Source: Camelus ferus | Lineage: Eukaryota | Length of the DNA stretch: 64,000 bases | NCBI RefSeq assembly: GCF_009834535.1 | Contig: NC_045705.1 | Location: 66,030,001 to 66,094,000, forward strand | Reading direction: 5' to 3' | Part shown: piece by piece, positions 3,609-28,000 of the stretch | Position numbering within the stretch: the stretch's first letter is position 1 | Layout: the number at the start of each line of letters is the position of its first letter | Translations under genes and position numbers: made by a program | Notes under the pieces: model-generated | What the model saw: the letters and a program-made list of their open reading frames with translations, nothing else | Told to the model about the DNA's origin: nothing | The model's database searches: none

Positions 3609-6600
3609 TTTCTCTAGAAGCTTCCTTGTAATACGTCCAAAGTACACAGTTCAAAATTCAAGCAAATTATTAATTACAAAACAAATTAAACAGAAAAAAA
3701 AAATCACATCATGATTTGTAGAGCGGCCGCTGCTTTCGCTGTTTCCCATGGTACAATCGCTATTTCATTTTAACTGGTGCGGGTTTCAGGAACTACGACC
3801 GTTCAGCTTGGCCTGCACCGCCTCTGTGTAACCCTCTTCCCTGTGGGCTCTCAAGCACCAGTGGGTATTTGGTTATTCTCAATTCCCACAGCATGAAATA
3901 AAAAAAAAACAAACAAAGCAAAACACATGATTGTTTTTATCTCTTGTTCCCTAACATTCCAAAAGAGTATTTGGCCATCAGTGGAGGCCTGGGCTTCACG
4001 TGAGATCAAACGCAGCAGCACAGCCTGGCATCAGAATGGACAGGCAAACTCAGGCACCTGCAAAGGGACCCAGGCAGGCTGGCGGGCTCTGGCCAACTGG
4101 GGAGCCAGGCCCCAGCAGAAGGGGATGCAGACAGGCAGCAAGGGTGGCTGTATGGGCCCAGTGTGGCCAGATCTTCTTACTTTTCAAGAAAAACCAGAAA
4201 CCCAGGTTTTATTATAAACTCTAGACTTTTAAACATTAGCAATTAGTTTTAAAAACTGCTTTAAGAATATACTGCACGTCTGTGGCCGGATGCAGTGCTT
4301 AGGCAGCCTGTTTGTGAATCTGGGGAGCAGTAGGTGGTTCCAGTGGGTTCCAGCCTGAATCTGCTGCTCATTAACTGCTTCTTACGGTGGTCGCTTCACC
4401 TCCCTCCTTTGGGTTCGGATCCTAACTACTACCACAGCGTACGTGCCTGTCACTCTGACTGACCCCTCTCGGCCCCAGCTTCCTCATCTATAAAATGCAG
4501 ATAACAGTACAACCCCTCTAACATGGATCTTATGGGATTAAATGAGATACTGCAGGCAAAGCTCCCACCTGCAAAGTAAGGTGACAGATACCAGCTATTA
4601 GCAGCTGTAAGCCTGGTGCCTCCCTCCTCACCATCCATTCACAATTAATCAGCAAATCCTGTTAAATAAGTTTTCTAAAACTGTCTCCAACCTGTCCTCC
4701 TGTTTTCATCCCCACTCTCTCTGCCTTCGTTCATAGCCTCATCCTCTCAGCCCTGAACTGTGCATAACAGTGATCTAATAAACACGCCCCCTTCTTATTG
4801 AGCACCTACTCTGTGCCGAGCACCTACTTAGTGCCCACTTTGACCCACCCTCATGCTGCACCCAGTTGATTCCACCTCTTGGCTTGGCAAGTTATGTAAG
4901 CAAGGATCTGATGACGTCATTCTCCCTGTCAGCTACAGAACAAAGGTTAACTGCCTTAATCCTGCATTCAATGCTGGCCCCAGGCTCTCCTCCAGTTCAT
5001 ACCCTACCTACAGAGGGTGGCTATAACCCTCTCCCTGCTCCAGCCACACCCAAGTACTTTTCTTGCCTTTTCCTGAATAAGCCACATGGTTCCTGGTCCT
5101 CATACATCAGCAACACTATTCTTTCTGCTTAGAATGTTTGTTTGTCCTGTCCTCACCCAGTGTCAACCCCTTCTCACCCTTCTAAGTCCAGCCCCAAACG
5201 GTCATCTCCACCACAAAGCCTTCTCCGATCATGGCCCCAACCAGGCCCCACAGTCGCGCCCTCCCGCCTCTGCATTTCCCACCACACTTAGTACATAGGC
5301 CCTTCAAACCCATCTCACAATGCATGGTAACTGACACTGAGACACCTGTCTCAACAGGAGACAGGAAGCCAAGGGCCAGAAGCGGATGCCTTATATTTGT
5401 CACACTCCCAGTTAGCACAGAGTGAGTGTTCAGCGTCGGCTGAATGAATTCAGGGGACCAAGTGGGCATTTGAACAAAAGCCAAACAATAATGTCACTTT
5501 TAATATAACCTCTTGTTAGAAACAGGGATCTTTGGGAATATGCAAAGAAAGAATAATAAAACTACTTAAAATCACTCAGGAGCCCTAGATTCCCCAAAAT
5601 GTGTACATCTGGTTAATTTTAGTAAAAAATGGTATTTTATATATATATGAAGTTCCAGCTACCCAGATGATTGAAAATATCTGCACTTACAAGCTGGTGT
5701 CACGGTTTCTTGATCTTTGTGTTTTCTTTCTGTGGTCTCAGTGGAATGCATCTGATACTCCAGGAGAAAGTGTAATCCAGCCGAAGAGCAAGTCTGATTA
5801 TTTGGTTCACAATTTATATACTGTGCAGCGCAATCTGAGAGGCCCACACCACTGAAAACGGCCCGTCTTGACCTCATGCCCGTGAGGGCCTCTCATAAGA
5901 GAGGCAACCATTTCTCGGTACTCAGATAATCATCAGAGGAGGCCAGAAGTGGATGATCTCGGGAAGGCAGAGATCTGGGAAAGAAAATAAACATCACTGT
6001 TTTTTGGCATTTACATTCTGGAAAACTTGCCTCTGAAGCGCACATTCAACAAGCATTCACTGAATGAATGGAAGGGTTGTTCCACAGCCTCACTCCCCAC
6101 CCCCCAGGGCTGATGGCCGACCTCGCTTTGGCAGGCTAGGAAAGCGAGTTGTGGGGCTTGGCTAGTAAGAACAGAGGCAATTCAGCAAAGCGGTTTCCAG
6201 TGCAGGTCTGGGATCAGGCTGCCTGTGCTCAGAGCCCCGGCAGTTTCTACCTGGCAGATCTCATGGAGTAACAGTTCCTATCTCAGAGAGGTGTTGGAAG
6301 GAATAAATGATAGAGGACATATAAAGCGCTTAGCATGGTGCCCACGAAGTTATTCTGGTGGTTACAAGAATTCAGTACACGTTAGTCATCATCCTTGGTT
6401 AAAAAGATCCTACTGCTAGCATTGAGCCTTCTGTAGCTTATCTTTAAGACTCTGCCCACACCCAATATCTCTATTTTATTGTCTTAACTATGAGATCGGA
6501 GTTCCTAGAGAATGGAAGAAGGGAGCAAACTGTAAACTTCTGACCGATGAATAAGCCGAAACATTGGAGACAGGAAGAAAAAAGGCCACATGCACAGAAC

Positions 6601-7659
6601 ACCTGGTCGCGTACAGTGGCTCAGGCATGAAACAGATTTGGACTCTCGATGGCCGTGCTGGAAGGGAGATAACAAAGGGGCCTGCCTACAGACTGCTGGG
6701 GAAATGCTATACCTAGACAAGCTTAGACAAGCGCGGAATAAGGCATTTTCAGGCATTTGAGGCTTCGAACAACGTGAGATACGCTAAGGAACAGAGTAAA
6801 TTGTTCCCGCCATTTCTCAATAGATGTTAAATAGTATTGAGACAGGTAAAGTCATTGAATGTGAAGGACTGAGTCACACCACAGATACCTGCTGAGGGTC
6901 TACGAGGTGTGGGTTAGACAGCGGACTAGACCACGTAACCCAACAGATACACACTGATCCCTCACAGAGCCTACATTCTAGTGAGGAGAGAGAGACAGTA
7001 AACAACGACAGAAGGGAAACTCTGAGTCACAGGTTGATGAAGGTTCCAGAGAAAGGAACTGGGACCTAAAGACCCAATTCTGAGTATACAAGGACTGCGG
7101 GAGAGAGAACTGGTTATATGACATCATCTGGACACAAACAGATAAATCCAGAATGCTGACCTTTGAGAAGAAAACAGGTCAGGATTCGTTAAAAAGTAAA
7201 AGTTGTTAAAAACAAAATAACAGGGAGATTAATGTAGAATTAAAAATCCCATTCAATGTACAAGCCCTTGATTAGATCCTGGGCCAAGGGAAAAAAAGTT
7301 AAAAAAGATATTCTGGCGACAAGGAAGGACATTTGAATATAGATGGAAAGTTAGGTGATGTTAGGGAATTATTCTTAAATTTTAATTTATTAAATTAAAA
7401 AATTTTTAATTTACTTAGGTATTGTGGATATGTAAGAGAATGTCTTTATTCTTAGGAGCTATGTACTGAAATAGATAAAGCAAATAGGGCAAACTGGTAT
7501 CAACTGTTGAATCTAGAAGAGAATATTTAGTTGCTTATTGCACTAATCTTTCAACTTTTCTGTATATATGAAAATATCCAAAACAAAAAGCTGGATAAAA
7601 AGAAAAGGGGAAGAAATAAGCATAGATGACTTTTTGGAGGAATTCTACTGTAAAGGGAG

Positions 7660-8147
7660 TGTATTAATTTCCTAGAGATGCTGTAACAAGTTACTACAAG
7701 CTGGATGGCTTAAAAGCACAGAAATTTCTTCTCTCACAGTTCTGGAAACCAGAAGTCTTCAAATCAAGATATTGGCAGAGGCCACACTCCCTGCAGAGGT
7801 TCTAGGGAAGAAGTCATTCTTTGCCCTTCCAACCTCTGGTGGCTATTAACATTCCTTCACTTGTGGCTGCATCACCCCTGTTTCTGCCTCCGAGGTCACA
7901 CTGCCTCCTCCGCTTCTGTGGGTGTCTGATCTCCTTCTGTCTCTCTCTTATAAGGACACTTGTGGTGGCATATCAGGCTCACTCCGATAATACAGAATAA
8001 ACTCCTCCTCTCAAGATCTTTAACCTAAGCCCATCTTTCACTCTAGAAGGTAACATTCACTCTTACATCACGTGGGTGATACCCACAGGTTCCCGGGATT
8101 AGGAAGTAAATATGTATCTTTGAGGGGCCACTTTTGTGCCTAACACA
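7660..8147 (-). mobile_element. Solo MaLR LTR (MLT1-type)
   Basis: TG...CA termini. The reverse complement follows the MLT1 layout (TGTGTTAGG...GGCCCCTCAAAGATAC...CCTAATCCCGGGAACCTGTG...GTCCTTATAAGAGAGAG...AAATTTCTGTGCTTTTAAGCC...GGAAATTAATACA). 5-bp target-site duplication GGGAG at 7655-7659 and 8148-8152. Confidence 0.9.
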
Positions 8148-8269
8148 GGGAGGAAGAAAAATGGTCATAGCTAGAGGGGAATGTGGGGCCAGGAGAGGTT
8201 GGTTGTTTGTTTTAAGATGAGAGAAGTGACAACATGTCTACAATAACTGATTTGGGACAGTTTGTGGCA

Positions 8270-10330
8270 CACTGCAGTAGCAGTACAATAGCAGTTTATC
8301 TGTCCATTGTGTTAGCGACCGGAATGCAGGAAAACCCGTAAAGAAAATAGCAAAGTACCCTCAGGAAGAAAATCAGGGTTATTCTTTGAGCATTCAGTTA
8401 AGAACAATGAAAAGGTAATGGAGGAAGGAGACTTTTTGTCAAACTCAGCAGATTGAACAAATATATACATTTAATTCCAAACACCACCAAGATGAAGATA
8501 AAGGAATACATTTGGTGTAAAACTGTAAAAACAAAGAGGGCAGGAGAGCAGATGACAGTGGATCAGAGGGGTGAGCAAACTTTTGGAGTTGGAGGGGGAA
8601 CCACCTTAGCAGAGTGCAGGATGCTGGGATTTAATGCTCAAATTGGGGGATATAAACAAGAAAAGTTTATATTCTCACTCTACTTGTCCCTCCACCAAAG
8701 TTCAGGACCTGGATGGGCCAGATACCTCAGGTAAAAGGAGAAAGGCATGGAGCTGAGAACAGGGAAATGTTTACAAGACTGTATATAAAGCAGTTAAACT
8801 CATAAATCCCCTCTCCAACCCTTATTAGCCTAGCATTGGCCCCTTGTGGGGTATCAGAGGGTTATTCTCTGGAGAAACTGAATTTGCAAAGCATCGACTC
8901 AGGGACACCAGGCACGGCTGAGACTAGTGGTGAGCACTGAGCTGAAAACAAAAGGGCTGGGTGAAAATATATCTGCTGGGTGTGGGACCCACAACCCTAT
9001 TCCCCTGCCCTGCAGCCAGGATGTCAGCACTGGTGGCCATGCACATACTCCCCAGATAAGAGACTGGAGAATTCTTCTCTGGAGAAACTGAATAGTCCCA
9101 GCAATGTGATGTACAGATTCTGACATTTGAAGGTACCAAAAAACAAAAACAAAAACCCTGCTGCTCCATGTTAGAATGAAGCCCATCAATTAAAAAGCCC
9201 CATCTGTGCACACAGAGTTCCCAGTTAGTTCTGCCTAGCATCCTGTTCTTAAATATAAATAGACAAAGATCAAACATTTGAGAAAAACCTCCAACAACAA
9301 CACACATACACACACCCGAAAGGAGGGAGGGGAATTCAGAGGAAATAGTGAAAAACAGTGAAGACTTAAAAACAGGAAAATCCCTCAGAGATCTAAGAGA
9401 ACAGGTATAAGAAACAAAAGCAGAAATGTCATGTGTAAAAGAAAAGAAGCAATCAAGCAAACAAGAGAGTTAAAACGGAAAATCCAGTAGAAAGGACAAG
9501 AAGATAAAATTAAAATTTTCTATCCAGAGAGTAGAACAAAAATAGAAGGACAAAAGTAGAAAAAAAGTTAAAAGCTATAATTCAGGCTCCAATATCCAAT
9601 CACAGAAGCACTTGGAAGTTAGCAGAGCGTGGGAGCAATGCCTTTGAAATTCTAAGGGAAAAACATTGCCAACCTAGAATCCCATACCCAGTTAAACTAT
9701 CAGTCATATATGAGAGAAGAATCAATATTTTCAGACAGATAAGGTATCACAAAGTTTACCTCCCACAGTCATTTTCTCTGGAAGCTATTAGATGATGTGG
9801 CTGACCAAAATGAGGCTACAGAACAACAGAAAAGGAAGGTCTAAGATCCAGGCAGTAGGAGATCCAACACAGAGAAACAGAGAGAAGTGTTGTGAAGCTC
9901 AGGAAAGCAGCTCTGGAGCAAGCCTAGAATGCAGCCGCTCTCCCATCAGCCCCAGAGGACAAAGGGCTCCAAAAAGGAAATTGCCAGCGTGAAAAAATGG
10001 AATTGATACATCTGTTAGATTTGATTATACGAACAAAAATATAGCATGGGGTTTACTGACCTTTTGAAGGCTAGGGAATATTAGGAAAGGGTGTGTAGAA
10101 AACTAAACAATTAAAAAACACGAGGCTATTAGAAATGTGTTATGATACAATATTATGAAGTTTCTACCCTTTAGAAATTTTAGAGAATTTAAAAAGCATG
10201 TGGAGGAGAAAGGGTGAAGTATTCCTTTCATCTTACATATCCATGACTGCTTTTCACCACCTTTTAGATCCCTACCCAAGAGACAAACAGGATTGAAGAG
10301 CCTACGTCTTGATACTGATGTCTTGACCAT
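8270..10330 (+). mobile_element. Old L1M 5' region: 5'UTR, degenerate ORF1 and start of inter-ORF spacer (approximate boundaries)
   Basis: ORF1 C-terminal signature GCAATGCCTTTGAAATTCTAAGGGAAAAACATTGCCAACCTAGAATCCCATACCCAGTTAAACTATCA at ~9635-9705. A 19-bp direct repeat TTCTCTGGAGAAACTGAAT (8865-8883, 9075-9093) lies in the UTR-like part. A-rich + strand, no intact frame. Confidence 0.7.
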
Positions 10331-10460
10331 AGGTACTTAGGGAGTCCCCTCTCTTCCTGGGGAAGAGAGTGGCTGATGGATGACATGTGAAAGCCCCAAA
10401 GGAGACAGACACAGGGGAAAAGTCCATGCGATCAGATGAATAATTAAAAGTCAACGATGA

Positions 10461-10584
10461 GGGGGGAGGGTATAAGTCAAGTGGAAGAGCACATGCTTAG
10501 CATGCATGAGGTCCTGAGTTCAATCCCCGCTACCTCCTCTTAAAAAAAAAATAATAGACCTAATTACTTACCCCCACCAAAAAC
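10461..10584 (+). mobile_element. tRNA-derived SINE (camelid-type)
   Basis: GGGGAGGGTATAAGTCAAGTGGAAGAGCAC (A box), GAGTTCAATCCC (B box), A tail. 15-bp TSD AAAAGTCAA(C/A)GATGA at 10446-10460 and 10585-10599. Confidence 0.9.
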
Positions 10585-11507
10585 AAAAGTCAAAGATGAA
10601 AGCAATAATAATAATACAAAATAATTGAGACAATGCCAAAGCAAGTCCTAGCAATTCAAACGTGATATGGAGAGAAGGGCAATTTGCAGGAATGGTGATC
10701 ATGGTGAAGTGATCAAAACAGTGCAGCCCAGCAATGATTCTGGACACAATTTGGGGGCTAGTTAGAGGGAAGAGCAGTGAGGATAGGCCTGGTCCAGATA
10801 TACAGGGCCCTGTGAGAGGCCTGTCCCATTAGATTGTAAAATCAGCTACGCGGGAGAAGTGGGTACAGACATAGTGAAGGAAAAACTTTAAAATCCAACA
10901 AACATAATCACTGTTATGGGATTTGGCTTCTTACTTTTTTCTTCACTTCTTTATTTTCTTATCTCTGCTCTGGCTTTTGTCACTTCGGAGCTCCTCATTT
11001 TTCTTTCAGACCCTCTTTCAGAAATTGTGTTCGTTTACTCCAGCCTGCATCTTCTTTCACAACCTTCATTCTCTATCCTTATCTGGCTGTAACTTCCCAT
11101 TTTTCTCCCTATGCATTCTCCTACATCTCATAAACCCCATCATATGTTAAACTACATTCTTCTAGCCCATCCTAAATCCATTTCTCAAACCTTTCTCGAC
11201 AAGCTCCTCAGTCACAGCTCTTCTCCAAGAAACCAACATCCACTTTTCCTCTATCAACACACTAATAAATCTTCTCTTTCTTTTCACAATGTTCCATTTC
11301 ACTCTTTATCACTCTTCTTCACTTCCTTTGGTCCTGCTCTGTCTGCCTTCATTCCCAGTAACAATTCTCTTAAGCTCAGATGCTCTCCCTTCTCTCTCAT
11401 ATTTACCTTTTCCGGGTCAATAATGTTCTGCTTGGCTCTAATTTCTCCTTTTTGACTTGGCAATACTTCCCCTAGCTGCTTCTCTTTCCTTCTTTAGCTT
11501 AAATCCT

Positions 11508-12710
11508 TCATGTGCCTCCTTCATCAGTACCTTCCTCTGTAATCTCTTTCTCTTCCATAGAAACAGATTCATCAGTATTATCATTCCTTCCATCCAAGAC
11601 ATCCTCCTCAACCTCCACCCCTTCCTCAGTCTCTTCTAGCTCTTCATCAGTCTCCTCTACCCTTTCAGAAGGAATTTCCATCTCAGCATCAGTAATTTCT
11701 ATCAATCTTTCATCACTAGTAACTTCTACCACTCTTTCAATTTTCTTTTCATTTATGCTCCCCATTCTTAAACCCTCCAGCTTCTCTCCACTAGTCCCCA
11801 GCTTCTCCCTACTGGATCCCAGCTTCTCTGCAATTGACCGACGTCTATCTCCAGTGGATCTCAAATCCTCTCCACTAGACCCCAGCTTCTCTCCCCTGGA
11901 TCCCCTCTTCTCTCCCCTAAACACCAGCTTCTCTCCACTCTGCCTTAGCCTCTCTCCACTGGACCTCAGATTCTCTCCACTTGACCTTAGCTTCTCTCTA
12001 CTCAATCTCAGCTTCTCCACACTCGACCTCAGCTTCTCTCCACTTGAACTCAGCTTCTCTCCACTTGACCTCAGCTTCTCTCTACTCGATCTCAGCTTCT
12101 CCACACTCGACCTCAGCTTCTCTCCACTCAGCTTCTCTCCACTTGACCTCAGCTCCTCTTCATTGTGCCCTAGCTTATATCCTCGGGATCTCAAGTCCTC
12201 TCCACTGGTTTCCACTCCAGTGAACTTCAACCTCTCTTTAAACCCAGACCCTCGCCTAGACCCTGCATTCTCAGATTCAGCCCCTGTTTTGTGTCTCACG
12301 TCTTGCTTTCCTCCCACCTCCTTTGAGCTGTCTTTCCCCAAACCTGCTGAAGCCTGTAATGCACTTGCTACAGTGTGCACTCGTTTCACATCCATCCTCT
12401 CCTGACTCCGACCTAACTTTTCTCTCAAGACTGTCTTTCCCACATCTTCCAGTCTCCAGTACTCAGACTCAGGCTTCGGGTCCCACATCCTTGGCTTTTG
12501 CGTATTTCTAACCAGGAGCTCCATTCTCTTCCCAATCACAATGAGCCCGTTCCAAGGCATCCACAGTTTTTCTCGCATAATCTGCGCCCCTCTACTTCCT
12601 GGCTCCAGTTGCGACCGCCCGAGGACCCCAGCCTGGCTGAGGGCGCCCTGGCCGTGGGTCTTGTCGCGCCCCCTCGCTGCCCTGTGTGGCTTACCCCGCC
12701 ACTCCCTCAT
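11508..12710 (-). CDS. Uncharacterised intronless ~400-aa protein with a 7-aa (SSGEKLR) repeat domain and Glu-rich C-terminus
   Basis: The frame is open from 12749 (GTG). First ATG at 12710 has A at -3 (AACATGA); stop TGA at 11508-11510. The indel visible inside the repeat preserves the frame. The 5' end lies in the CpG island shared with SNX32. No homologue recognised. Confidence 0.6.
   Translation of the reverse strand: MREWRGKPHRAARGRDKTHGQGALSQAGVLGRSQLEPGSRGAQIMREKLWMPWNGLIVIGKRMELLVRNTQKPRMWDPKPESEYWRLEDVGKTVLREKLGRSQERMDVKRVHTVASALQASAGLGKDSSKEVGGKQDVRHKTGAESENAGSRRGSGFKERLKFTGVETSGEDLRSRGYKLGHNEEELRSSGEKLSGEKLRSSVEKLRSSREKLRSSGEKLSSSGEKLRSSVEKLRLSREKLRSSGENLRSSGERLRQSGEKLVFRGEKRGSRGEKLGSSGEDLRSTGDRRRSIAEKLGSSREKLGTSGEKLEGLRMGSINEKKIERVVEVTSDERLIEITDAEMEIPSERVEETDEELEETEEGVEVEEDVLDGRNDNTDESVSMEEKEITEEGTDEGGT
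11775..12209. repeat. 21-bp minisatellite, ~21 copies (unit CTTCTCTCCACTTGACCTCAG on + strand)
   Basis: Read directly. The reverse complement CTGAGGTCAAGTGGAGAGAAG encodes LRSSGEK. Confidence 0.95.
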
Positions 12711-13350
12711 GTTCCAGTAGGGAAATCCAAACGGAACCCGCTTGTCCACAGACAGCTCCTGCCCTCGTCCCTAGTCCGCCACCCCAACCCCGGCTCCCCA
12801 TTCCCACCCCACCGCACCCTCCCACCCAGACCACTGGCCCATCGCCCCACCCACCGCCTGGAGGGCGCGAGACTGGGCTAGTGCGCACGCGCAGACCGCG
12901 CGAGGCCGTTGGAAGGTGCGGCCCAGAGCGGCGGCTGGAGGGATTCAGCCAGCCTGGGGCGGGGGCTGACGGGACACGAGATGTCTGCGACCCTAGAGCC
13001 CCCACGAATCCAGCCCCTACGCCATAGCCCATTCCTGGCCCTTTTAGTTCCGTGCTTCCCCTTAAAATGTGGGGCCTGGGCACACGAACGACAGACCTTA
13101 CAGCCAATGGTGTCCCGCACCATAAATCTGGTATCCAATCAAAAGGCGAGGCTGCGAGGGCCCGGCGTGGGAACCACGCCCGACTTCAGGTGACTCTATG
13201 GCAGGGAGGGGAGAGTGTCTCCATCAGCTGATAGGATCCCCATTCCAGTCCGTTCTTCGGGGCGAGTTACTGGGGACCAAGCTGCGGGAGCGTGCGGGCA
13301 GTGTGACCTGTCGCGGAATCTTTGCGTGCTGTAGTCGAGGAGGAGAGTGA
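12560..13350. promoter_or_regulatory. CpG-rich bidirectional promoter (SNX32 / unknown ORF)
   Basis: CpG-dense. NRF1-like TGCGCACGCGCA at 12882-12893. CCAAT boxes at 13104-13108 and 13135-13139. Confidence 0.7.
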
Positions 13351-13463
13351 TGGAGGAGCATCAAGAGGCTGGGAAGGAGAGCAAGGTAGAGAAAGGATGC
13401 AACCCCCTCTGCCAACCTCCGCCTCACTCCATGATACCCAGTGATGCCCAATCAGGGAGTGGG

Positions 13464-13494
<31 letters not shown>

Positions 13495-16400
13495 TTCGCG
13501 CTCACGCGTGAGCTAGAGAGAGAAGATACCTGAGAAGGGGGGTTGGGCGCCTCTGTGGCATCTGCATGGGGACTGGTGAAGATGCCAAAGGAGGCAGGGT
13601 TTACCTTTGCCTTGACAGATGGAAAAGGACCTGTCACTCTTACTCCTTCCCTCCGCAAAATCGACGCATGCTGATTTGTTGGGGAAGAAGAGGGAAGGAT
13701 GTTAGGGATTGAGAAAGGGCTTGAGTACCTTCCTCCTTTCCCAAGGTGAGGGGAATCCTCAGCACTAGTGGCTTCACATGTGTATCTGTATTCATATAAT
13801 CGTAAGTCCATTCATTCTTCATTGTTTTCTCTTGACTTCATTTAACAAATAGTTTCTGAGCATCTTTGTGCCGAGGCTGATTGGGGCTGGACATACAGAG
13901 GTGCACACTTTTAGGGATTGGAGGCATATACCTGCGACTGAGGATAAGAATGCAGCAGCTATGGGCCATCTTTGAAGTCCCATCTTCTTCAAGCAGTTAC
14001 CAAGCAGTGCAGGTCAGAGCAGAGATACTAAGCTGGAAGCAGACAGGAGCGTTGGGGCCTACTGCACCAATGAGCCAGACTGTTTGTTTTGTGTGTGCGT
14101 GTGTGTGTGTGTGTTGTGGGGTGTGGGCAGTTGGACAGAGGAAGATCCTGCCCTAGGGATGTCAGAGAAGCCAAGAAGTGAGGATTAGGGTTCAAGTGGA
14201 GTTTGGAGAGGTGAGAGGGGTTTTGAGACACAAAGTATGGAACAGAAGGCATCTGTTTCAATGTTTATGTTCATATTCATGGTTAAATTAGTTGATATAT
14301 ATAAAATGCTTAGAGCAGTGCCTGTCATATAGGAAGAGCAAATATGTTAGCTATTATATTATTATTATTGTTATCATGTGGGATGCTATGTATTCTGAGG
14401 ATGTGCTGGGCTGTCAAACTAATGGGTGCACCCCCAACCTTTATAGGTGCCAGGCTGTCTGAAAGTCCACTCTTAGACCTTGTCCTCTAGAGTAAGCCAT
14501 TGACTTCTCCAAGATTCTCCTTTAAATATAGAGAAAGGAAAATAATAATAAATGAGTATGTAAGTAAAAAATATTGTAGAGGAGAAAATGAAATAATATA
14601 AAATACTTGACTGATCTAACAGAAGTCAAGAAAGAATGGATAAAGAAACAAAAGACAGATGGGACAAAGAGAAAACTAAAAGCAAGATGGCACGTTTATA
14701 GCCTACTATATCAGTAATTACAATGATGATGAATGGGCCAGACACTGCAATTAAAAAATAATTTCAGGTTGAATTTTTAAAAGACAACTGTATCCTGTTA
14801 AACAAGACATGCTTTATAAGGACACAGGAATACTGAAAAAAATAATGAAAAATAAACACTATGAGCAAACTAACCGAAAGAATGCTGGTGTGGCTTTATT
14901 AATTTCAGACAAAGTCAACTTTAAGATAAGAAAGAAGTATTACTAGAAATAAAGAGGGATATTTTATAATGATTAAATAATCAATTCAACAGCAAGATAG
15001 AACAGTCCTCAGTTTTATGCACCTAATAACATAGCTTCAAAATATGCAAAGTAAAAAATTACAGAATTAAAAGGAGAAATAGACAAACTTATAATTACAT
15101 TTAGCGGTTTAACACAACTTTCAGTAAGTGTCAACAGACAAAAAAATCAGTAAACATTTAGAAAATTTTAAATAACATGATTAATCAACTTGATAATTGA
15201 TCTGTATAGAACTCTATACCCAACTACTGTAGAAAACACATTCTTTTCAACTGTACATGAAACATATAATGTATTTTGGTAAATACATTGCACTATAGAG
15301 AAAGTATCAACAAATTTTAAAATACTGAATTCATATAGAATGTGACCTCTGGCGGGGAAGTTATAGATCAGTGGTAGAGTGGGTGCTTAGCATGCACTAG
15401 GTCCTGGATTCAATCCCCAGTACCTCCATTAAAAAAAAATAAAACTAATTACCCCACCCCCACCCCCTAGAAAAGAATGTGATCTCTGATCCAGTAGAAT
15501 CAACTAAGAATCAAAACAAAAAAGGAACTAGATTCTAAAGTATTTAAAAATTAACCAGCATACCTCTAAGTAATTCATAAGTCAAAGATATTATTATGGA
15601 AATTAGAAAAACTTTACAGAAATTATTTTGAAAAGATGACATATCAGAACTCATGAGATGCAGTTAAAGCAGTGTCTAAAGGGAAATTTATACCTCCAAA
15701 TGCATATTTTTGGGGAAAAACAAGGTTGAAAAGTCAGTGATCTAATTTTAATCTCAAGAAGCTACATAAAGAGGAGCAAATTGAATCCAAGAAAGTAAAA
15801 GGAAAGAAATAAAAAAGAGCAGAAATCAATAAATAGAAGATAACTTTACATATAGAGAAAATCAATAATGCCAAAAATAATTTTTTGAAAATGTTAATAA
15901 AATTGATAAGCCTCTAGCAAGACTGATAAAAGAGAGAAAGAGCAGGAGGGAGACCAAGAGGGTGAAAGGAAGAAAACATTGATTACCAATATCAGGAATG
16001 CTAAAGGGCACATCACTGGAGATGCTTCAGACATTAAAGAGATAATAAGAGTGTTTAATAACAAACTTACGCCCACAAATTAGAGAATTAAGATGAAAAA
16101 TAAACTCCTCGAAAAATGCAACTTACTGAACCTGAAATTAGAAGTAAAAAAATCTGAGTAGTCCTATGCCTATAATAGGAACTAAATCTGTAATTTAAAA
16201 CTTTTCCAAAAATACCTAAGACCAGGTAACTTCACATGTGAGTTCTTTGAAGCATTAAAGGAAAATTAATATTATTCTTATATAAATTATTCCAAAAAGG
16301 AGAAATGGAGGGCACAATTCCAATTTATCTTAGTAGGACAACATAACCTTGATACAAAACCCATCAAGAGAAGATGGACGATGATGATGGTTGCATAACA

Positions 16401-19400
16401 TTGTGAATTTACTTAATCCCACTGAACTGTTCACTTAACAATGGTTAAAATGGTAAATTTTATGTTATGTATATGTTAACACACACACATACACAAACCC
16501 ATCAAGAACATTATAAGAAAGGAAATATATGGGTTACTATCTCTTGTGAACATGCAAAGATGCAAAGATCACAAATAAAATATTAAGTTTAATAAGCAAT
16601 GTATAAAAAGACAATACGTCATGAGACAGGCCTTCTCTAAGGAATCCAAGGTGGTCTAATGTTTGAAAAATCAATCAGTGAAATTCAGCACATACACAGA
16701 ATAACAGGAAAATCTATATGATATCTAATAAAGGAAGGAAAAAAATCGATAAAACTCAAAACTTATTAAACCAAGCATAGAAGGGAGCCTCATTTACCTG
16801 ATAGAGTATCTAAAAACATCTTCAGGATTAAATTTTCAATGCATTCCCTCTGAGATCAGGAACAAGCCAAGAATTTTCTTTATAACCATATCACCACTTT
16901 TGAATTGTACTGTTAAGTCCTAGCAAGTACAGTAAGGCAAAAAATAAAAGCTATGAAGCTATGAATAAAAGCTTGGAAAGGAAGTCATTATTTTAGATTA
17001 TAGGATTGTATATATAGGGAATTCAAAAGAATCTACAAACTATTAAAAGTAGTAAGTAAACTTAGCAAGGTTCCTGGACACAAAGTACATATATAAAAAT
17101 CAGTTGTGTGTTTCTATATTCTAGCAACAATTAGAAAATGAAATTTAAAAAATATAATTTAAAATATCAACAACAGCAAAAAAAAAAAATACCTAGGAGT
17201 AAATCTAACAAAAGATATGCAAAACCTCTACAGAGAAAACTGCAAACTGTTAACAGAAAAATTAAAGAAGACCTAAGTGATTGGAAAGATATTCCACGTC
17301 CATGAATTGGAAAATTTAGTATCGTAAAAATGTCTGTCCTTCCCAAATTGATCCATAGTTCCAATGTAATCTCAATCAAATACCCACAAGTTTTTTTTCA
17401 GGTGGAAGTTAGCACACTGATTCTAAGATTTATGTTGAGATGCGAAGGATCTAAAATAGCCAAAATGATTTTGAAAAAGAACAAAGTTGATTCTATCTGA
17501 TTTCAAGTTTGCTTATCAATTACAGTAATCAAGAGAGTGTGATATTATCAAAAGTATGACCATATACATCAGTGGAACAGAGAATACAGAACTGATCACA
17601 CTTGGATCAATTGATCTTCTGCTAAAGTGTGCACCAAAGCAAATCAATAGTGAAAAGATAGTCTTTTTTAAACAGTGTTAAAATCACTGGATATTTAGAT
17701 GACAAAAAGGAATCACAACCCATTCCTTTACACTGTATACAAATGAATTGAAAATGGATCATAGACCTAAATATTAATATGTAAAAATGGATCACAGACC
17801 TAAAACTAATTTCTACAAGGAAAAAAATAAGAGAATATCTTCATAGCCTTGGAGTAGGCATGTTCTTCAAGAGTACACAAAAATCCTTAACCATAAAAGG
17901 CTGATATATTGAACTTGTAAAATTATAAGCCATTAAGAGAGTGAAAAGGCAACCCACTGAGTGGAAGATATTGGCAAACATATAACTGACGAAGGGCTCG
18001 TCTTCAGAATATGTAAAGTGTTTCTACAAATCACTAAGAGAAAGATGATTAGATTTTATAAAGAGGACGGCAGGGAGGAGCAAAAGACTTGAATAGGCAC
18101 TTTAAAAAAGAAGATATGAAAATGGCCAATAGGTACATAAGACAGTGTTCAAACTCATTCCTCACAATGCAAGTTAAAGCCGCAGTGCACTGTCACCGCA
18201 CCTCCACCGGTGTGGCTGAAGTTGGAAATAGCTCAATGCAAGAACAAACTAGTAACTTGGTGCCTCACCGATCTTTTCACTTAGAGAAATACGAGTGCTT
18301 GACCTACAAGTCAGGGCCTCTTGGCACTAAAAGTAGTGAATGGAATGGTCTCAGGACCCCCTCAAAACAGGTGGGAACATCTCATCCAACTCACTTTACA
18401 CCTGGTGAAAGTGCACCTGAGGTAACCCCCTGGGAAGGGGTGGGCAGGTAGCTGAGGAAGTGCCTGGGGTTTGGAAAAGAGAAACTCTGTTCAGATCTGG
18501 TCTGGACACTTTGCAGCCGTATAATCTTGGACAAGTTATTTTCTCTCTCTGGTGGTCTCAGAGCCCAGGCCTATAAAATGGGGAGAATTCTGCCTACTTC
18601 AGAGGATGGAAGGGTGAGAAAGTGTAACAGTAAAGCCATGAGCAGTGACTTCTCAGGATCCCTCTGGGGGTAGCCAGCTGGTGACCCCAGCTGTGTGGTG
18701 GAAGTGATGCCACTGAGGTGGGTTCCACAGGAGGACCAGAGCTTGTGGCGAGGTTGGGCAAAGGGGCAGTGGTCAGTCTTGTCAGGGGCCCCCTTCCCCC
18801 ACAGCCTTCCTCCATCTCAGCGGATCTGCCGGGAGACAGCTCCTTGTGGGTGGAGATCTCTGATGCAGTCAGCGAACGGGACAAGGTGAAATTCACTGTT
18901 CAAACCAAGGTGAGGCTGCTTGGGGAGAAAGGGGGTGGTTCAGATGGCTGCCAGTGGAGGCTTCCGGGGCCTGATGAGCCTGCTCCCCTTAGCTTCTGCT
19001 CAGCTGGGGGGCAGATGCCAACACAGCCTTGGGCCCTGTTCCTCAACCTAGCTCTTGCCCCCTGGCCCTCTGAGAAAGTGGGCATCTTGTCTAGTCTCTG
19101 AAAACCTTTGCCTAAGGCTCCAAATCCTAACCATCCCCTGTCCACCATCCTGAGGGAAATCATGTACACTTGATTCCCAACTTGGGCCTCACCTGGGATG
19201 TGACATTGGGGAGGCCCCAAAGTGGGTGTCCAGGAAGCTTGAGGGGTGGAGGTTTTGGAGAGGGGAGAAGAGACACCTCAACACAGGCTTCCCGGCTTTC
19301 AGAGCTGCCTCCCTCACTTCGCCCAGACCGAGTTCTCAGTTGTGCGGCAGCACGAGGAGTTCATCTGGCTGCACGATGCCTTCGTGGAAAATGAGGAGTA

Positions 19401-22400
19401 CGCCGGCCTCATTGTGAGGAGGGGCCGGTGGGCCGGGTGGCAGGGGCACTGGGCACTTGGGTGAGGAGGAAGGTCGGGCCAGGCTTCAGGGTGCGGGGTC
19501 ATGGCCATCTCGACAATGAGAGGCCTCCCAGCTCTGTCCCTCCTTTGAGCAGATACCTCCAGCCCCTCCAAGGCCAGACTTTGAGGCTTCAAGGGAAAAA
19601 CTGCAGAAGTTGGGTGAAGGGGACAGCTGTGTCACACGGGAGGAGTTTGCCAAAATGAAGCAGGAGCTGGAAGCGTGAGTGCCACTTCCCTTCCTTGTCT
19701 GTGACAAAGCCCTGGCCCCAGCTGGGGAACCCCAGTATTTTGCCCCTGACTCTCCCCTATGGGTGCTTAGAGACCGTGCTCCTCACCCCAGGGCTGCTGA
19801 GGGGGAAGAGAGCAGGGTGATCAGAGCCCAAGAGGGCCCTTGAGCAGCCTGCCATTCTCTGCAGGGAGTACCTGGCTATCTTTAAGAAGACAGTTGCAAT
19901 GCATGAAGTCTTTCTTCAGCGCCTGGCAGCCCACCCCACCCTGCGACAAGACCACAATTTCTCTGTCTTTTTGGAATATGGCCAGGATGTGAGCCGGGCA
20001 GGAGACCTGGGGTCACCCCTGGGGGTGGAGGGGCAGGGCTCTAAGTGGGCCCAGGCCTCCATCTCTTCAGCTCTGCCAGTGGCATGTGCCTGGGGCGGGA
20101 GGTGCAGATGCCCACCCTGACATCATTACCCTCCCCACGCATGCCTCAGCTGAGAGTCCGAGGAAAGAACAGGAAGGAGCTTCTTGGGGGGTTTCTGAGG
20201 AATATCGTGAAGTCTGCAGATGAAGCCCTCATCACTGGCATGTCTGGGCTCAAGGTGACTCCCGGGGCCCCTCTCTGGATGCAACCCAGGGCCTCAAGTC
20301 CACAGCAAACACTGAGGCCCAGGGTGGCAGTGGGAGGGAAGCCACTGGTGGGGCCTAGCCTAGACGGAGATTTGCCATCCCTGGGTGTCTGTGGCTGACA
20401 TGTTCCCGGTGACTTGGTGTAAGTGGGTCCTGTCTGGCTCCCTTAGGAGGTGGATGACTTCTTTGAGCATGAGAGGACCTTCCTGCTGGAGTACCACATC
20501 CGCATCCAGGATGCCTGCCTGCAGGCAGACCGAGTCATACACTCTCACAAGAGTACGCAGGGCCCGAGGGGCCCTGGATCTCCCACCCCCTCTCCCCAGT
20601 GGTCCTACTCCCTGGGGGGAGAAGAGAACAGAAATGCCCGGTGTCTGTCTGAGGCCACAGACACCAGGGATGGGGCTTGGCGTGCAGACTCTGATAGAGG
20701 GCTTTTCCCCAGCAGGCCTGGCAGAGGGTTTTAACCCTATCTCGGCTGCACTGAACAGTCTAGGAACACAGGAAGTCAACCAGCTAAAGACGTGAGGACT
20801 CCTCACCCACCCTGCTCTCTTTCTATGCCTGTAATACTGTGTCTGCCCATGAAGGGTCACTCTGTGGAAGCCTACTATCAGCTCCAGGTGGGAGGTGCAG
20901 AAGCTCCTGTTAGGCTTTGGGAGAGAAAGGTTTCCCCAAGAGAGGCCTGAAGGAAGAGAGGCTTTAAGCCCCACTAAGATCCCTGCCCTAACTCCTGCCC
21001 TCTGCCTCCTAGGAGCTTCTTCAAATTGGCAGAGCTCTTTGAACGGTTAAGGGTGAGTACTGCCTTCTGTGTTGAAAGGCCACCCAATGATCCATTGCAG
21101 GGAAGAGCGTCTGAGGAGAGGGGAAAGCTCCAGGTTCATTTTTGAATGTTCAGTGGTAACTTGGGCCTAGTGATGCCCTGACTCACTCTCCAGGATAGTT
21201 TACTAAGAGGTGGAGTGAAGACAGGGATCCAGCCTCAAGTGTGTGTCGTAAAGGAGGAGGTGGTGGCAGCCGGGCTGGCGAGGCACACACAAGGACGTGC
21301 CACGTGCCTCTGCCAGACTGCTGTGCTGCCAACATCCTTCCCCAGGCACACTCTTCCTAAACTCTTCTCCAAGAAAGTCACTGGAGTGTGTCAATCTTTC
21401 TAAAATGTCTGTTGGATTCCACCTCTTCCCTGCTCAAGGCCCTTCAGTGACATTGCCCCTTCCAGAAATTACCCAAGACACAAAGCCCAAAGTCCTTAGC
21501 TTGCATTTTGGACCTTTTGCAGTCTGGCCACTGCCATCCAAGTGCCCCCCACCCGCCCAATTAGGGTTCCCTGAAAACATATCAGGGCTTGCCACACCTG
21601 CAAAGCCTTTGGCTGTTGTCTAATCCCTACTCAACCCCCAAGATCCAGATCAGATGCCACCTCCTTTGTGAAGCCTTCCTCAGTCTGCTCCCCTGAATGT
21701 CAGGGTTTCACCTAGAGTGGCTGTCAAGTGACCCTGCTGGATGTTTAGATGAACAGCAGCACCCCAGCCCTTAGCTGCCCCTCTGCTAGCTCCCTCCCCA
21801 GCTTCCACCTTCCTGTTCAGAAACTAGAGAGCCGAGTGGTTTCTGATGAGGACCTGAAGCTGTCGGATTTGCTGAGATACTACATGCGAGACTCACAGGC
21901 AGCCAAGGTGAGAGGTGGCCCCAGAGCAGACCTCAGGGCTGGAGGCCAGTGGGACTGCAGCCACCAGGGAGGGCAGGCAGGCAGGTGAGGGCTGTGGGCC
22001 AGTGATCCTGCGCCCCTGCCGACCCCAGGACTTGCTGTACCGGCGGCTGCGGGCACTGGCTGACTACGAGAATGCCAACAAGGCCCTGGACAAGGCACGT
22101 ACCAGGAACCGGGAGGTGCGGACCGCGGAGAGCCACCAGCAACTGTGCTGCCAACGCTTTGAACGTCTCTCTGACTCAGCCAAGCAGGGTAAGCCCCACA
22201 GCCCTGGAGCCCCTGCCTGTAGGCTGCCTACCCTGCCAGGGTCCCTCTTCCTCTCCTCTCCAGAGCTCATGGACTTCAAGTCCCGCCGCATCTCCTCCTT
22301 CCGCAAGAACCTCATCGAGCTGGCAGAGCTGGAGCTCAAACACGCTAAGGTGAGCCCTGCAGCATTGTTGAGCCCTCTTGCTGTCTTCCTGGCTTCCCAC

Positions 22401-24652: not shown

Positions 24653-27556
24653 TCACAAAGGCTTGCCCTCCAGGGAGATGACGGCGCTGCCCCCCAGCTT
24701 CTCAGCTAGGGTGCAGCGGTCCTTGACCTCCTCATAGCAGTTTGCTTGTAATTCATGCTTGATCCCTGTGGAGAAGAAGGAAGAGCATCTGTAAGGAGGA
24801 GGCACTGGGCTGGGGGTGGGAGGTGTGGCTGGGAAGGAGCCAGTCAGAACAGATGGAAGGGACTAGGCTCTCCTCCAGCAGGCACGGGAGAGGAGAGGGA
24901 GGGATCTTCTTTATCATGCTATGCACTCCAGCCTGCAGCCAACGCCTGAGCAGAAAGGAGGGGCACCACCAATGCTGGCCCTTACCTGTCAGCTTCTTCT
25001 TGATGGCATCCTTGGAGCTGGCATAGATCATTTTGCTCTTGAGGGGTGCACACTCAGGGGCCCTAGAGGGAAAGAGTGAGACAACTGGCAGCAAAGCCCA
25101 CTCCTCCAAGTCTAGCAAGTGCCCTCAAGTGTACATGACTTCCAGAAGCCCCTGAAATGGCCCTTAGCACTCAAGCTTTTATCAAGTTCCTCATTGACAA
25201 GAGTTCTGTTACAATGTCCTCCCCAAATGCACACCTTTGGGTTAACCAGGAGCCACAGACCTTCCTGTCCTGAGAAGGGGGTGTGGGACAGAGCTACGGC
25301 AGGTGACAGGAGAAGGTGCCTACAAGAGGAGCTTACCAGAAGATAAACACCAGGTCTTCCTTCTTGCTCTCCTTGGTCTCATAGGTGGCGTCGTAGAGGG
25401 CGTAGCGACAGTCCTTGTCTGGCAGCATCTTGACAAAGGTGGCATAGGGGTCGTCTACAGTCTGGCCCACATCACCTACCAGGATCTCCTTGCCCTCCTC
25501 CAAGATGATGTTCTTCTTGTCCTCACTCAGGCAGAAGAGCACGGCCTTCTTGCGCTTCTTCACCTCCTCTGGTGTCGACGACTTACGCACCTTCATGTCA
25601 TTGAACACCTTGATGACGCCATCAGAGACAGCCACACCGGAGGCCTAGAGGGCGAGCCATATGTACCTCATAAGGAAAAGGTTTCTGGGACTTGCCCTGA
25701 TGTTCATCCTTTGCTTTCTTAGAAGTTCTGTCTGGATGCTAACAAGGATAATCCCCAGCCCCAAGAGATCATTAATCCCCTTCCAAGACTGTCACTATTT
25801 CCCCACCCAAGTCACTGTCAAAGGACCAGATGTGACACAACCCCAGAATAGCACAGACAAGATCTTTGATCTCATAATTCAACATCATTCCTCCCCACCC
25901 CAACATCCTGCAGCCTAGAAATTGAAGGCCTCTGAGAAACAGAGCCTTGGCCAAGATGTGAGTCCAGAACTAAAAAAAACAAAAAAACAAACAAACAAAA
26001 ACCCAGACTCCTGGCGCGTTTCCTACTCACAGAATTCAGTATCAGCTTCTGCATAAAGTGCTGAATCAGAACTTCAGATAATAGAAGAGAACCCAGACAC
26101 CCAGATCACAATCACCTCTAGGAGAGAACCAGGACCCCACAACCCTAGATGGGACACCAACGGTGCTCAACAGTTCCAGCAAGGCCATCAGAACCATTTA
26201 GTGCTGTTATTACAGAAAGTATCCTCTCCTCTACTGGGATCTTTCTGAACCAAAGCAGGAACCACAAACCTCTAATTAAGGCACTACCTGACAACTCCCC
26301 GTTCACAGGGAAAAATGCAGGACCCAAACGTGGCTGATACAAGTTAGCAGTCGAAATTCAAGGGCCCACAGTCCTTGAGGGCTCTTTAAACTTATATTGT
26401 GGGTCGTGTTGGAGGACACCCTAGCCAGGAGTGAAATCTGCCCCCGCTCCCGGAACTGCAGAGGAAGCCGGCCACGTGATCGAGCCGCTTCCGGAGTAGG
26501 CGGGGAAAGGAGACCGGCTATACTCAGGGCCTCCCCGAGAAAAACCCGTACCCAGAGGCAGCAGCACCTCCAAGGCCTCAACCCCAAGGAATCACCTTTA
26601 GGGACCAACTTATCACTCCCCTCTGCTGCGGGCCCGGACAAGTTACACAATCTTCGGCTCTTGCAGCCGTCAAGCCGAACACAGGGGGCGGGGTGGTTTC
26701 CGGGCGGTGTCCGCCTGGGTCACTTCCCTAAACTCGGCTCCACCCTCAGGCCCCATCCGGGAAAGCCGACGGCTCCGCTTGTCCAGGGCTTGGGGCCCAG
26801 CAGCCAGGCCTGAGCTTGTGCGCACGCGCCGGCCGACAGCGCCGTTCCAGCCTTTCCCGGGTGTACTCGGCGGAGAACCCAACTCGCCTTATCCGCTCGC
26901 TCGCTCCCGAGTACGGCCGTGGTCTCTGCGGTGTCCACTCGGTGCTGGACGGTGCAAGCCCCTAATCCCAGACGCCTGCGCTCGAACCCAAACACCCCCG
27001 CATCCCCGCTAGCCGCCGCCCCCGCCCTTCGCGGGCATCCCTGCCACCTGCTCTCGAGACAGACCCGTCTGCGAGGGAGGGTGACGCGGAGACAGGAACA
27101 GCCCTTGGGTGGGGCGCGCGCGCCGAGACCGCTCGCGCGCTTTTCCTTCGCCGCCCCCGGGCCAAGTTAGGATGCCGCGTGCTCCCGTCGAGCGCGCGCC
27201 CTCGTGAACTGACTCGCTTCGACCCCGCCGCGGCGCGCGCCACCGGCTGCTCCGCCAAGGGCGGGCGCGCGCGTACCCTGGACCCCTCCCCCACGGCCGG
27301 TGTCCGCGCGAGCGCCACGGTGGGGGAAGGGAAGGGAGTCCAGGGGGCGCGCGAGCGACGTCCGAGCCAGCCCTCACCGGCGCCCGCGGGGGCGCACGCG
27401 CGTCCCGGCGCCGCCCGCCCCTTAGCACGAGACCCTCATCTCGCCCGGGGAGCTGGGGGAGGGGGTGCCGACGTCGCTCTCCTGTTCCCTCCCGCGCGCG
27501 CAGACGATCGACTGGCAGCCGCCTCCCCTCCGGCGCCGTGGCCTGCCGCTCACCAT
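24653..27556 (-). CDS. CFL1: Cofilin-1 (non-muscle), 166 aa
   Basis: Exons 27554-27556 (ATG only), 25337-25644, 24986-25062, 24653-24765; 501 nt total. [25 protein letters not shown]...[47 protein letters not shown]...EGKPL. Poly(A) signal at 24115-24120 on the minus strand. Confidence 0.99.
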
Positions 27557-28000
27557 GTTTCCGGAAACGAAAAGGAGATAGCAAGGCGAGCCAAAAAGAC
27601 AAGAGCCGCTGCAGCTGCTGCCGGGATCCGACTGAACGCGGCCTCTCCCGGCCCCTTCCGTTTAGTATGAGCCGCACAATGAGGGGCGGGGCTGGCTTCC
27701 GGCGCTCCCCGCGCGGGCCGACGGGAAATGAAGTCCAAGCGTCCTGCGCTGTCCTCGGGCTCGCTGGGTAACAGAGTCATCCTCGTTAGACAGCCTCCCA
27801 GCACCACGTTGCCTATTGGGACATGTAGTCCGAGAGAGCCGAGAGGGGCGGGCCTATGGTACGGAGAGCGCGCCCGTTGGTCGAATTTCCCAGGAAACGC
27901 TCTGGACTGAACGAAACCCCGGCATTGGGTAATGTGACCAGAAAATAAACCCCGACTTCGCGGCTCTTTACCCCGTAGCGGAACGGTTTTCCTAAGATCC
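26400..28000. promoter_or_regulatory. CFL1 CpG island (intron 1 and promoter)
   Basis: Very GC/CpG-rich. GC boxes, reverse CCAAT (ATTGG ~27815), and an Ets-like CCGGAA just 5' of the ATG. Confidence 0.85.

Follow-up and report, generated by a model that had tools for sequence, protein, structure and literature searches.

A gene head-to-head with SNX32 in placental mammals very probably encodes a predicted disordered heptad-repeat protein with a constrained tryptophan-rich core

Does the long open frame that lies head-to-head with SNX32 in the camel genome encode a protein, and if so, which part of that protein has been held by selection? We addressed these questions in a 64,000-nt stretch of Camelus ferus DNA, hereafter the window, to which all positions refer. 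The minus strand at 11508-12710 carries an uninterrupted ATG-to-TGA frame of 400 codons plus the stop (ATG at 12710-12708, TGA at 11510-11508), and a GTG-started extension of the frame reaches up to 12749. An earlier note on this DNA had described a 1203-nt minus-strand frame with an A at -3 of its first ATG, and such a frame was present, with the start context AAC-ATG-A. The three-part build proposed in the same note, namely a basic N-terminus, about 21 heptads of SSGEKLR and an acidic end, was confirmed with approximately 22 heptads and net charges of +15 in the N-terminal 168 aa, +14 in the repeats and -28 in the last 77 aa. The heptad-repeat region, with the consensus S-S-G-E-K-L-R, covers aa 170-323 (11742-12203, minus strand), and the acidic C-terminal tail covers aa 324-400 (11511-11741, minus strand). 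Within the N-terminus, a core motif at K48-D89 (KLWMPWNGLIVIGKRMELLVRNTQKPRMWDPKPESEYWRLED; 12444-12569, minus strand) showed the strongest constraint in the ORF. This charge pattern, in which a basic N-terminus, a heptad array and an acidic tail are combined in one exon, was common to the eight species that we compared. Taking together the results given below, we regard it as very likely that 11508-12710 is a real single-exon protein-coding gene with this architecture, a degree of confidence that applies to the gene and not to its inferred function. The gene product, about 400 aa long, would be intrinsically disordered and composed of three conserved parts: the core-bearing basic N-terminus, the heptad array and the acidic tail.

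The earlier note had called the gene unrecognised, and this did not hold, as annotation pipelines already predict it in the wild camel (LOC116666689), in the dromedary (Cadr_000030314) and in dozens of placentals; yet it is unnamed, and no paper on it was found in the full-text literature using LOC and XP identifiers, peptide strings and the SNX32 context. Among 5.8 billion proteins searched, there were 86 matches, all from placentals except one weak match, and the best of them were 'uncharacterized protein LOC116666689' (C. ferus) and 'hypothetical protein Cadr_000030314' (C. dromedarius), the latter being 99% identical to the ORF protein. The ORF DNA was 100% identical to the locus in the Camelus ferus assembly GCA_009834535.1, and the complete CDS was identical to the LOC116666689 locus; the annotated C. 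ferus model is shorter (374 aa) and scores 87%. Other automatically predicted orthologues included LOC130850470 (hippo), LOC112659361 (dingo) and LOC104846807 (elephant). Matches were found in hippo, whales, ruminants, rhinos, carnivores, bats and a mole, in primates (macaques, colobus, orang-utan and lemur), and in rodents, rabbit, elephant, sloth and armadillo, so that the homologues cover Laurasiatheria, Euarchontoglires, Afrotheria and Xenarthra. These predicted entries share with the camel ORF the position beside SNX32, the core motif, the heptad array and the acidic tail, and are the same gene; they carry no function, family, Pfam domain or literature.

Some orthologues have been given borrowed names, namely 'protein Ycf2', 'cylicin-2', 'seminal vesicle secretory protein 2-like' and titin homolog, and the mouse orthologue is mis-named 'EF-hand calcium-binding domain-containing protein 5 isoform X2' (EFCAB5). 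Identity with cylicin, Ycf2, SVS2 or EFCAB5 was rejected, as there was no Pfam match to the domains of those families; the borrowed pipeline names stem from low-complexity similarity only. No Pfam family scored above threshold for the ORF protein, the best being UPF0449 (E=0.013, 16 bits against a cut-off of 27), and sequence searches of Pfam, NCBIfam and PDB gave only sub-threshold low-complexity matches. When a 34-species HMM of the N-terminus was searched against 1.84 billion representative proteins, 22 proteins were recovered, all orthologues except one, a bacterial TPR protein that matched on 'PWNGLGN' and was taken as a chance match. This profile search of 1.84 billion representatives gave no marsupial, monotreme or other vertebrate matches, and neither a paralogue nor a parent gene was found. 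On these data, the family is thus a placental-only orphan.

We then compared the loci of camel, hippo, dog, elephant, sloth, squirrel, a murid (Mastomys) and lemur. The ORF lies head-to-head with a gene for a PX+Vps5 protein in camel, hippo, dog, murid and lemur, and the syntenic position upstream of SNX32, which the earlier note had proposed as a check, therefore holds in these five species. In sloth the neighbouring gene is present without a Pfam record, and intact frames were also found in elephant, sloth and squirrel. By tblastn, the protein gave a single collinear match in seven loci and two overlapping matches in elephant. Of the 13-kb region, only a few segments, the ORF among them, could still be aligned between camel and murid, and the codon-model tree, which grouped camel with hippo, elephant with sloth, and squirrel with murid and lemur, with dog on its own, corresponded to the accepted mammal tree. 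Pipeline models for elephant and squirrel (elephant locus 6001-21378 and squirrel locus 6001-12517) add distant exons, giving 685 aa in elephant. These exons appear to be modelling artefacts or introns of the UTR, because the conserved protein is contained in one exon in both species.

The neighbouring gene is called a PX+Vps5 protein in the public camel assembly as well, and its first coding exon, on the plus strand, lies at 13350-13450, with the SNX32 ATG at 13350 and thus 640 bp from the ORF ATG at 12710. The earlier reading of an intronless gene in divergent orientation to SNX32 was therefore borne out, both in the single exon and in the neighbour. A modest CpG island of about 900 bp (12500-13400; GC 0.58-0.72, CpG o/e 0.64-0.74) is common to the two genes; it spans the first ~210 nt of the ORF, the 640 bp between the genes and the SNX32 ATG, in agreement with the claim that the ORF starts inside the SNX32 island. 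The shared island is presumed to be a bidirectional promoter, from which the ORF gene would be transcribed divergently from SNX32. Several other features of the surroundings were recorded. A (GT)16 microsatellite lies at 13464-13495, right behind SNX32 exon 1. In the first intron of SNX32, a long AT-rich stretch (14500-18000; GC 0.27-0.32, with A exceeding T on the plus strand) aligns with the same intron in hippo, dog, sloth and lemur and may be an old repeat. Coding motifs of Cofilin-1 (CFL1) were found at ~25446-25617 on the minus strand, and they are followed by a CpG island (26000-28000; GC 0.69, o/e 1.09) that is the most pronounced in the window and presumably the CFL1 promoter. The gene order SNX32-CFL1, which we take to be the general arrangement, matches the motifs found.

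Two alternating in-frame start sites were found among the eight species. Hippo, elephant, squirrel, murid and lemur have site A (M-S-V-E-K), and camel, hippo, dog and sloth have site B (M-R-E/D), so that at least one of the two was kept in 8/8 species and their turnover was complementary. The segment 12711-12770 (minus strand), an upstream in-frame extension in camel, is homologous to the alternative N-terminus MSVEKGVPFGF of other mammals. Because camel has CTG at site A (12755-12753), the camel protein probably starts at the second site, the ATG at 12710 (MREW). The stop position was the same within 3 codons in 7/8 species, the exception being hippo, which stops earlier, inside the tail (7039-7041 of the hippo locus). 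Truncation of the acidic tail was seen in both hippo and Rhinolophus. The most divergent members belong to vespertilionid bats (Pipistrellus and Myotis), with 181-254 aa, few repeats and an altered core in which W53 is replaced by F in Pipistrellus. The gene is thus eroded in some lineages, with shortened forms and a changed core in vespertilionid bats and a truncated tail in hippo and Rhinolophus.

An open frame in a purine-rich region could arise without coding function. According to this explanation, the 21-bp minisatellite, itself rich in purines, is part of an lncRNA or of a divergent promoter transcript, and the openness of the frame follows from composition and from a unit length divisible by 3. 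The minus strand is indeed strongly purine-rich over 10750-12750, and a change in the copy number of a 21-bp unit keeps the frame. However, purine-rich sequence of this kind is stop-rich. The camel ORF frame contained 0 stops, compared with a mean of 23.7 in 300 dinucleotide-preserving shuffles, none of which was stop-free, and the other two sense frames in camel contained 30 and 36 stops, indicating that the ORF is not an artefact of composition. Across the comparison set, stop-to-stop frames of 367-562 codons were intact in 8/8 species and contained no stop where 17-24 were expected, and the other sense frames had 18-38 stops; the open frame in other mammals, another check proposed in the earlier note, was therefore found throughout. 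The 640 nt after the stop served as a control. This 3' flank (10870-11507, minus strand), which is non-coding in 8/8 species and probably represents the 3'UTR, is as purine-rich as the ORF (0.62-0.73), and it had 8-25 stops in most frames. Since 7/8 species share the position of the stop, the flank, if it was ever coding, would have been so before placentals radiated.

The pattern of indels was examined in nucleotide-only alignments. All 15 indels in the non-repeat N-terminus and all 4 in the tail were multiples of 3, whereas this was the case for only 16/72 in the 3' flank, where 56/72 were not (19/19 vs 16/72; Fisher p=2e-10). The species were chosen from proteins predicted to be intact, so that both the indel and the open-frame tests are partly conditioned on this choice, and the argument rests on the number of lineages that keep the frame and on omega. 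At the rates seen in the neutral flank, no lineage should keep 1.2 kb open, yet dozens from all four placental superorders do so.

The opposite strand was also considered. A plus-strand ORF at 11512-12405 (297 aa, rich in Ser, Leu and Pro) mirrors the repeat, and the low number of stops in this antisense frame (0-6) could be cited for the non-coding explanation. The frame is, however, broken in 7/8 species (2-6 stops, with 0 in lemur), and we rejected it as a gene; it is a by-product of sense codon usage. On the transcript side, three short Logan contigs start 30-100 nt upstream of the ORF, and none has an A tail past any poly(A) signal; because they pass such signals without an A tail, they were treated as genomic. 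No conserved polyadenylation signal was found in the 3' flank of the eight species, AATAAA at 10955 being common to camel, hippo and lemur only.

Substitution patterns were quantified as omega with the GY+F3X4 model in IQ-TREE, with 2dlnL calculated against omega=1. The dN/dS below 1 that the earlier note had named as a test was obtained for the N-terminus (omega 0.55, 2dlnL 38.0) and not for the acidic tail (omega 0.85, 2dlnL 0.9), where the value was not significantly different from 1. The signal in the N-terminus was concentrated in the core K48-D89 (42 codons; omega 0.25, 2dlnL 34.9), and the remainder of the N-terminus gave omega 0.70 (2dlnL 11.0). By NG86, the median omega of the N-terminus was 0.52 in frame versus 1.03 and 0.67 off frame; in the tail there was no frame-specific signal, with similar NG86 values in all three frames. 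The near-neutral tail would be expected if the frame were non-coding. On the other hand, the N-terminus lies outside the minisatellite and so beyond the reach of the copy-number argument, and it shows both purifying selection and in-frame indels only. Taking this together with the stop-rich flank and the broken antisense frame, we consider the non-coding explanation largely refuted and very improbable.

It could also be asked whether the conserved element acts at the DNA level, as an SNX32 promoter, enhancer or 5' regulatory element, with the protein being incidental. The strongest conservation (12444-12569) is found at the margin of the SNX32 CpG island, less than 800 bp from the SNX32 ATG, and the segment 12711-12770, which in camel is probably not translated, is conserved as well; both are consistent with such an element. 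However, substitutions in the core were concentrated at synonymous sites, and in this frame only, a pattern not expected from DNA-level constraint. Regulatory function would also leave unexplained an open frame of 1.1-1.7 kb with nearly the same stop in most species. We therefore give this explanation, too, a very small probability and favor selection on the encoded protein.

To characterize the core, we aligned 20 and 34 orthologous sequences. The consensus W-x-P-W-N-G-L-I-V-I-G-K-R...L-L-x-R was found in the camel ORF and its orthologues, and residues W50, P52, W53, L56, V58, G60, L65 and R68 were invariant in 34 species. AlphaFold2 prediction of the full-length protein with the 20-sequence alignment gave a mean pLDDT of 40.7 and a pTM of 0.14 with no secondary structure, and the model of the N-terminus with the 34-sequence alignment gave a pLDDT of 50.8, no helices and a small beta bridge at residues 58-63. 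The core was the only pLDDT bump in the protein. The ESM Atlas model had a pLDDT of 0.39, and feature and structure searches of the ESM Atlas yielded no informative match (highest score 0.68, highest TM 0.30). These models predict that the ORF protein is disordered. Two readings of the core by motif were set aside. GLIVIGKR resembles a Walker A motif (G55-LIVI-G60-K61), and residue 62 is Arg, not Ser/Thr; a P-loop NTPase was rejected, as no folded domain was predicted and there were no Pfam or PDB matches. The other reading, in which WNGL would be a W-x-x-L (LIR-like) motif, is a conjecture. Because the selection pattern concentrates on the Trp-rich core, we regard it as the probable functional determinant. 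This 42-residue segment, the only strongly constrained part of the protein, would most likely be a short linear binding motif, possibly forming a beta-hairpin on binding.

The heptads are the most conspicuous part of the sequence. According to Tandem Repeats Finder (TRF), a 21-bp unit is repeated 18.5 times at 11778-12159, with copies that match at 72% and a higher-order period of 84 bp. When degenerate flanking units are included, the heptad region reaches 154 aa. Unit number varied from ~15 to 36 depending on the species. Position 7 of the heptad is Arg in camel, hippo, dog, sloth and lemur and Gly in elephant, squirrel and murid, and murids have a 14-residue unit with RRGS in which Leu is largely lost (5%). 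Unit diversity within the array, examined by codon position, was weakly informative.

The strict Leu periodicity invites a structural reading, in which the product is a coiled-coil sperm or testis structural protein, cylicin-like and located in the perinuclear theca or the flagellum, with the heptads forming a long alpha-helical rod. The autocorrelation of hydrophobic residues supports the periodicity, with values of 15, 13 and 13 at lags 7, 14 and 21 and 0-6 at other lags, and a gene that is single-exon, charge-rich and fast-evolving would suit this reading, as would the pipeline names 'cylicin-2' and 'seminal vesicle secretory protein 2-like'. Classical heptad coiled coils share the 7-residue hydrophobic periodicity with the ORF repeats, but they have hydrophobic residues at both a and d and are alpha-helical, whereas the ORF repeats have one hydrophobic residue per heptad, contain ~14% Gly and ~21% Ser/Thr, and were predicted to be non-helical (pLDDT ~40). 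Moreover, the names come from families to which there was no Pfam match, and a rod would be difficult to reconcile with the loss of Leu in murids. The coiled-coil check proposed in the earlier note was thus negative, and we consider a coiled-coil sperm protein unlikely, if slightly less so than the non-coding and DNA-level explanations.

The SSGEKLR array would instead be a flexible, length-variable and probably multiply phosphorylated Ser-rich spacer, and the weakly constrained acidic tail may serve to offset its basic charge and that of the N-terminus. S/T-x-x-E/D (CK2-type) sites were predicted in the array of every species, with 9-28 per array or ~8-12 per 100 aa, and R-x-S sites (4-10 per 100 aa) were less uniform across species. 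The density of Ser/Thr has thus been preserved together with the S/T-x-x-E/D spacing, whereas the length of the array and its exact unit have drifted. The earlier note had likened the repeat to an array for basophilic kinases; judging from these consensus sites, any phosphorylation of the array would be at least as likely to come from an acidophilic kinase of the CK2 type. The neurofilament-H KSP tail, Nopp140 and Treacle are multi-phosphorylated disordered repeat proteins, the last two having repeats with CK2 sites. The ORF protein resembles them in its long, predicted disordered, Ser-rich and charged repeats, in the recurring spacing of kinase consensus sites (RRGS-type sites in murids) and in a copy number that varies between species. 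However, there is no sequence relationship, the SSGEKLR unit and the Trp-rich core are unique to the ORF family, and the phosphosites of the ORF are predicted only.

In kind, the gene product is therefore ordinary, a lineage-restricted disordered repeat protein presumably expressed from a CpG-island promoter in common with a neighbour, and the one element without an explanation is the constrained core. As a tentative proposal, to which we give about one chance in four, the core would be a placental-specific interaction module and the protein a phosphorylation-tuned disordered scaffold that arose in the placental stem from the bidirectional SNX32 promoter and a coding minisatellite, with a role in male germ cells or in SNX32-related trafficking. 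Whether expression of the gene is biased to the testis is close to an even guess, made by analogy from what is expected of young, fast-evolving, single-exon genes.

For annotation, these results mean that the misleading names Ycf2, cylicin-2, EFCAB5 and SVS2-like deserve to be replaced by a single name for the orthologue group. The locus also provides an example of a coding minisatellite in which copy number changes and the unit drifts, from the 7-mer SSGEKLR in most species to the 14-mer with RRGS in murids, and the frame is kept. Although retained over approximately the entire radiation of placentals, the gene lacks a name, a domain, a structure and a paper, and the map of selection directs experimenters to the 42-residue core, not to the eye-catching repeats.
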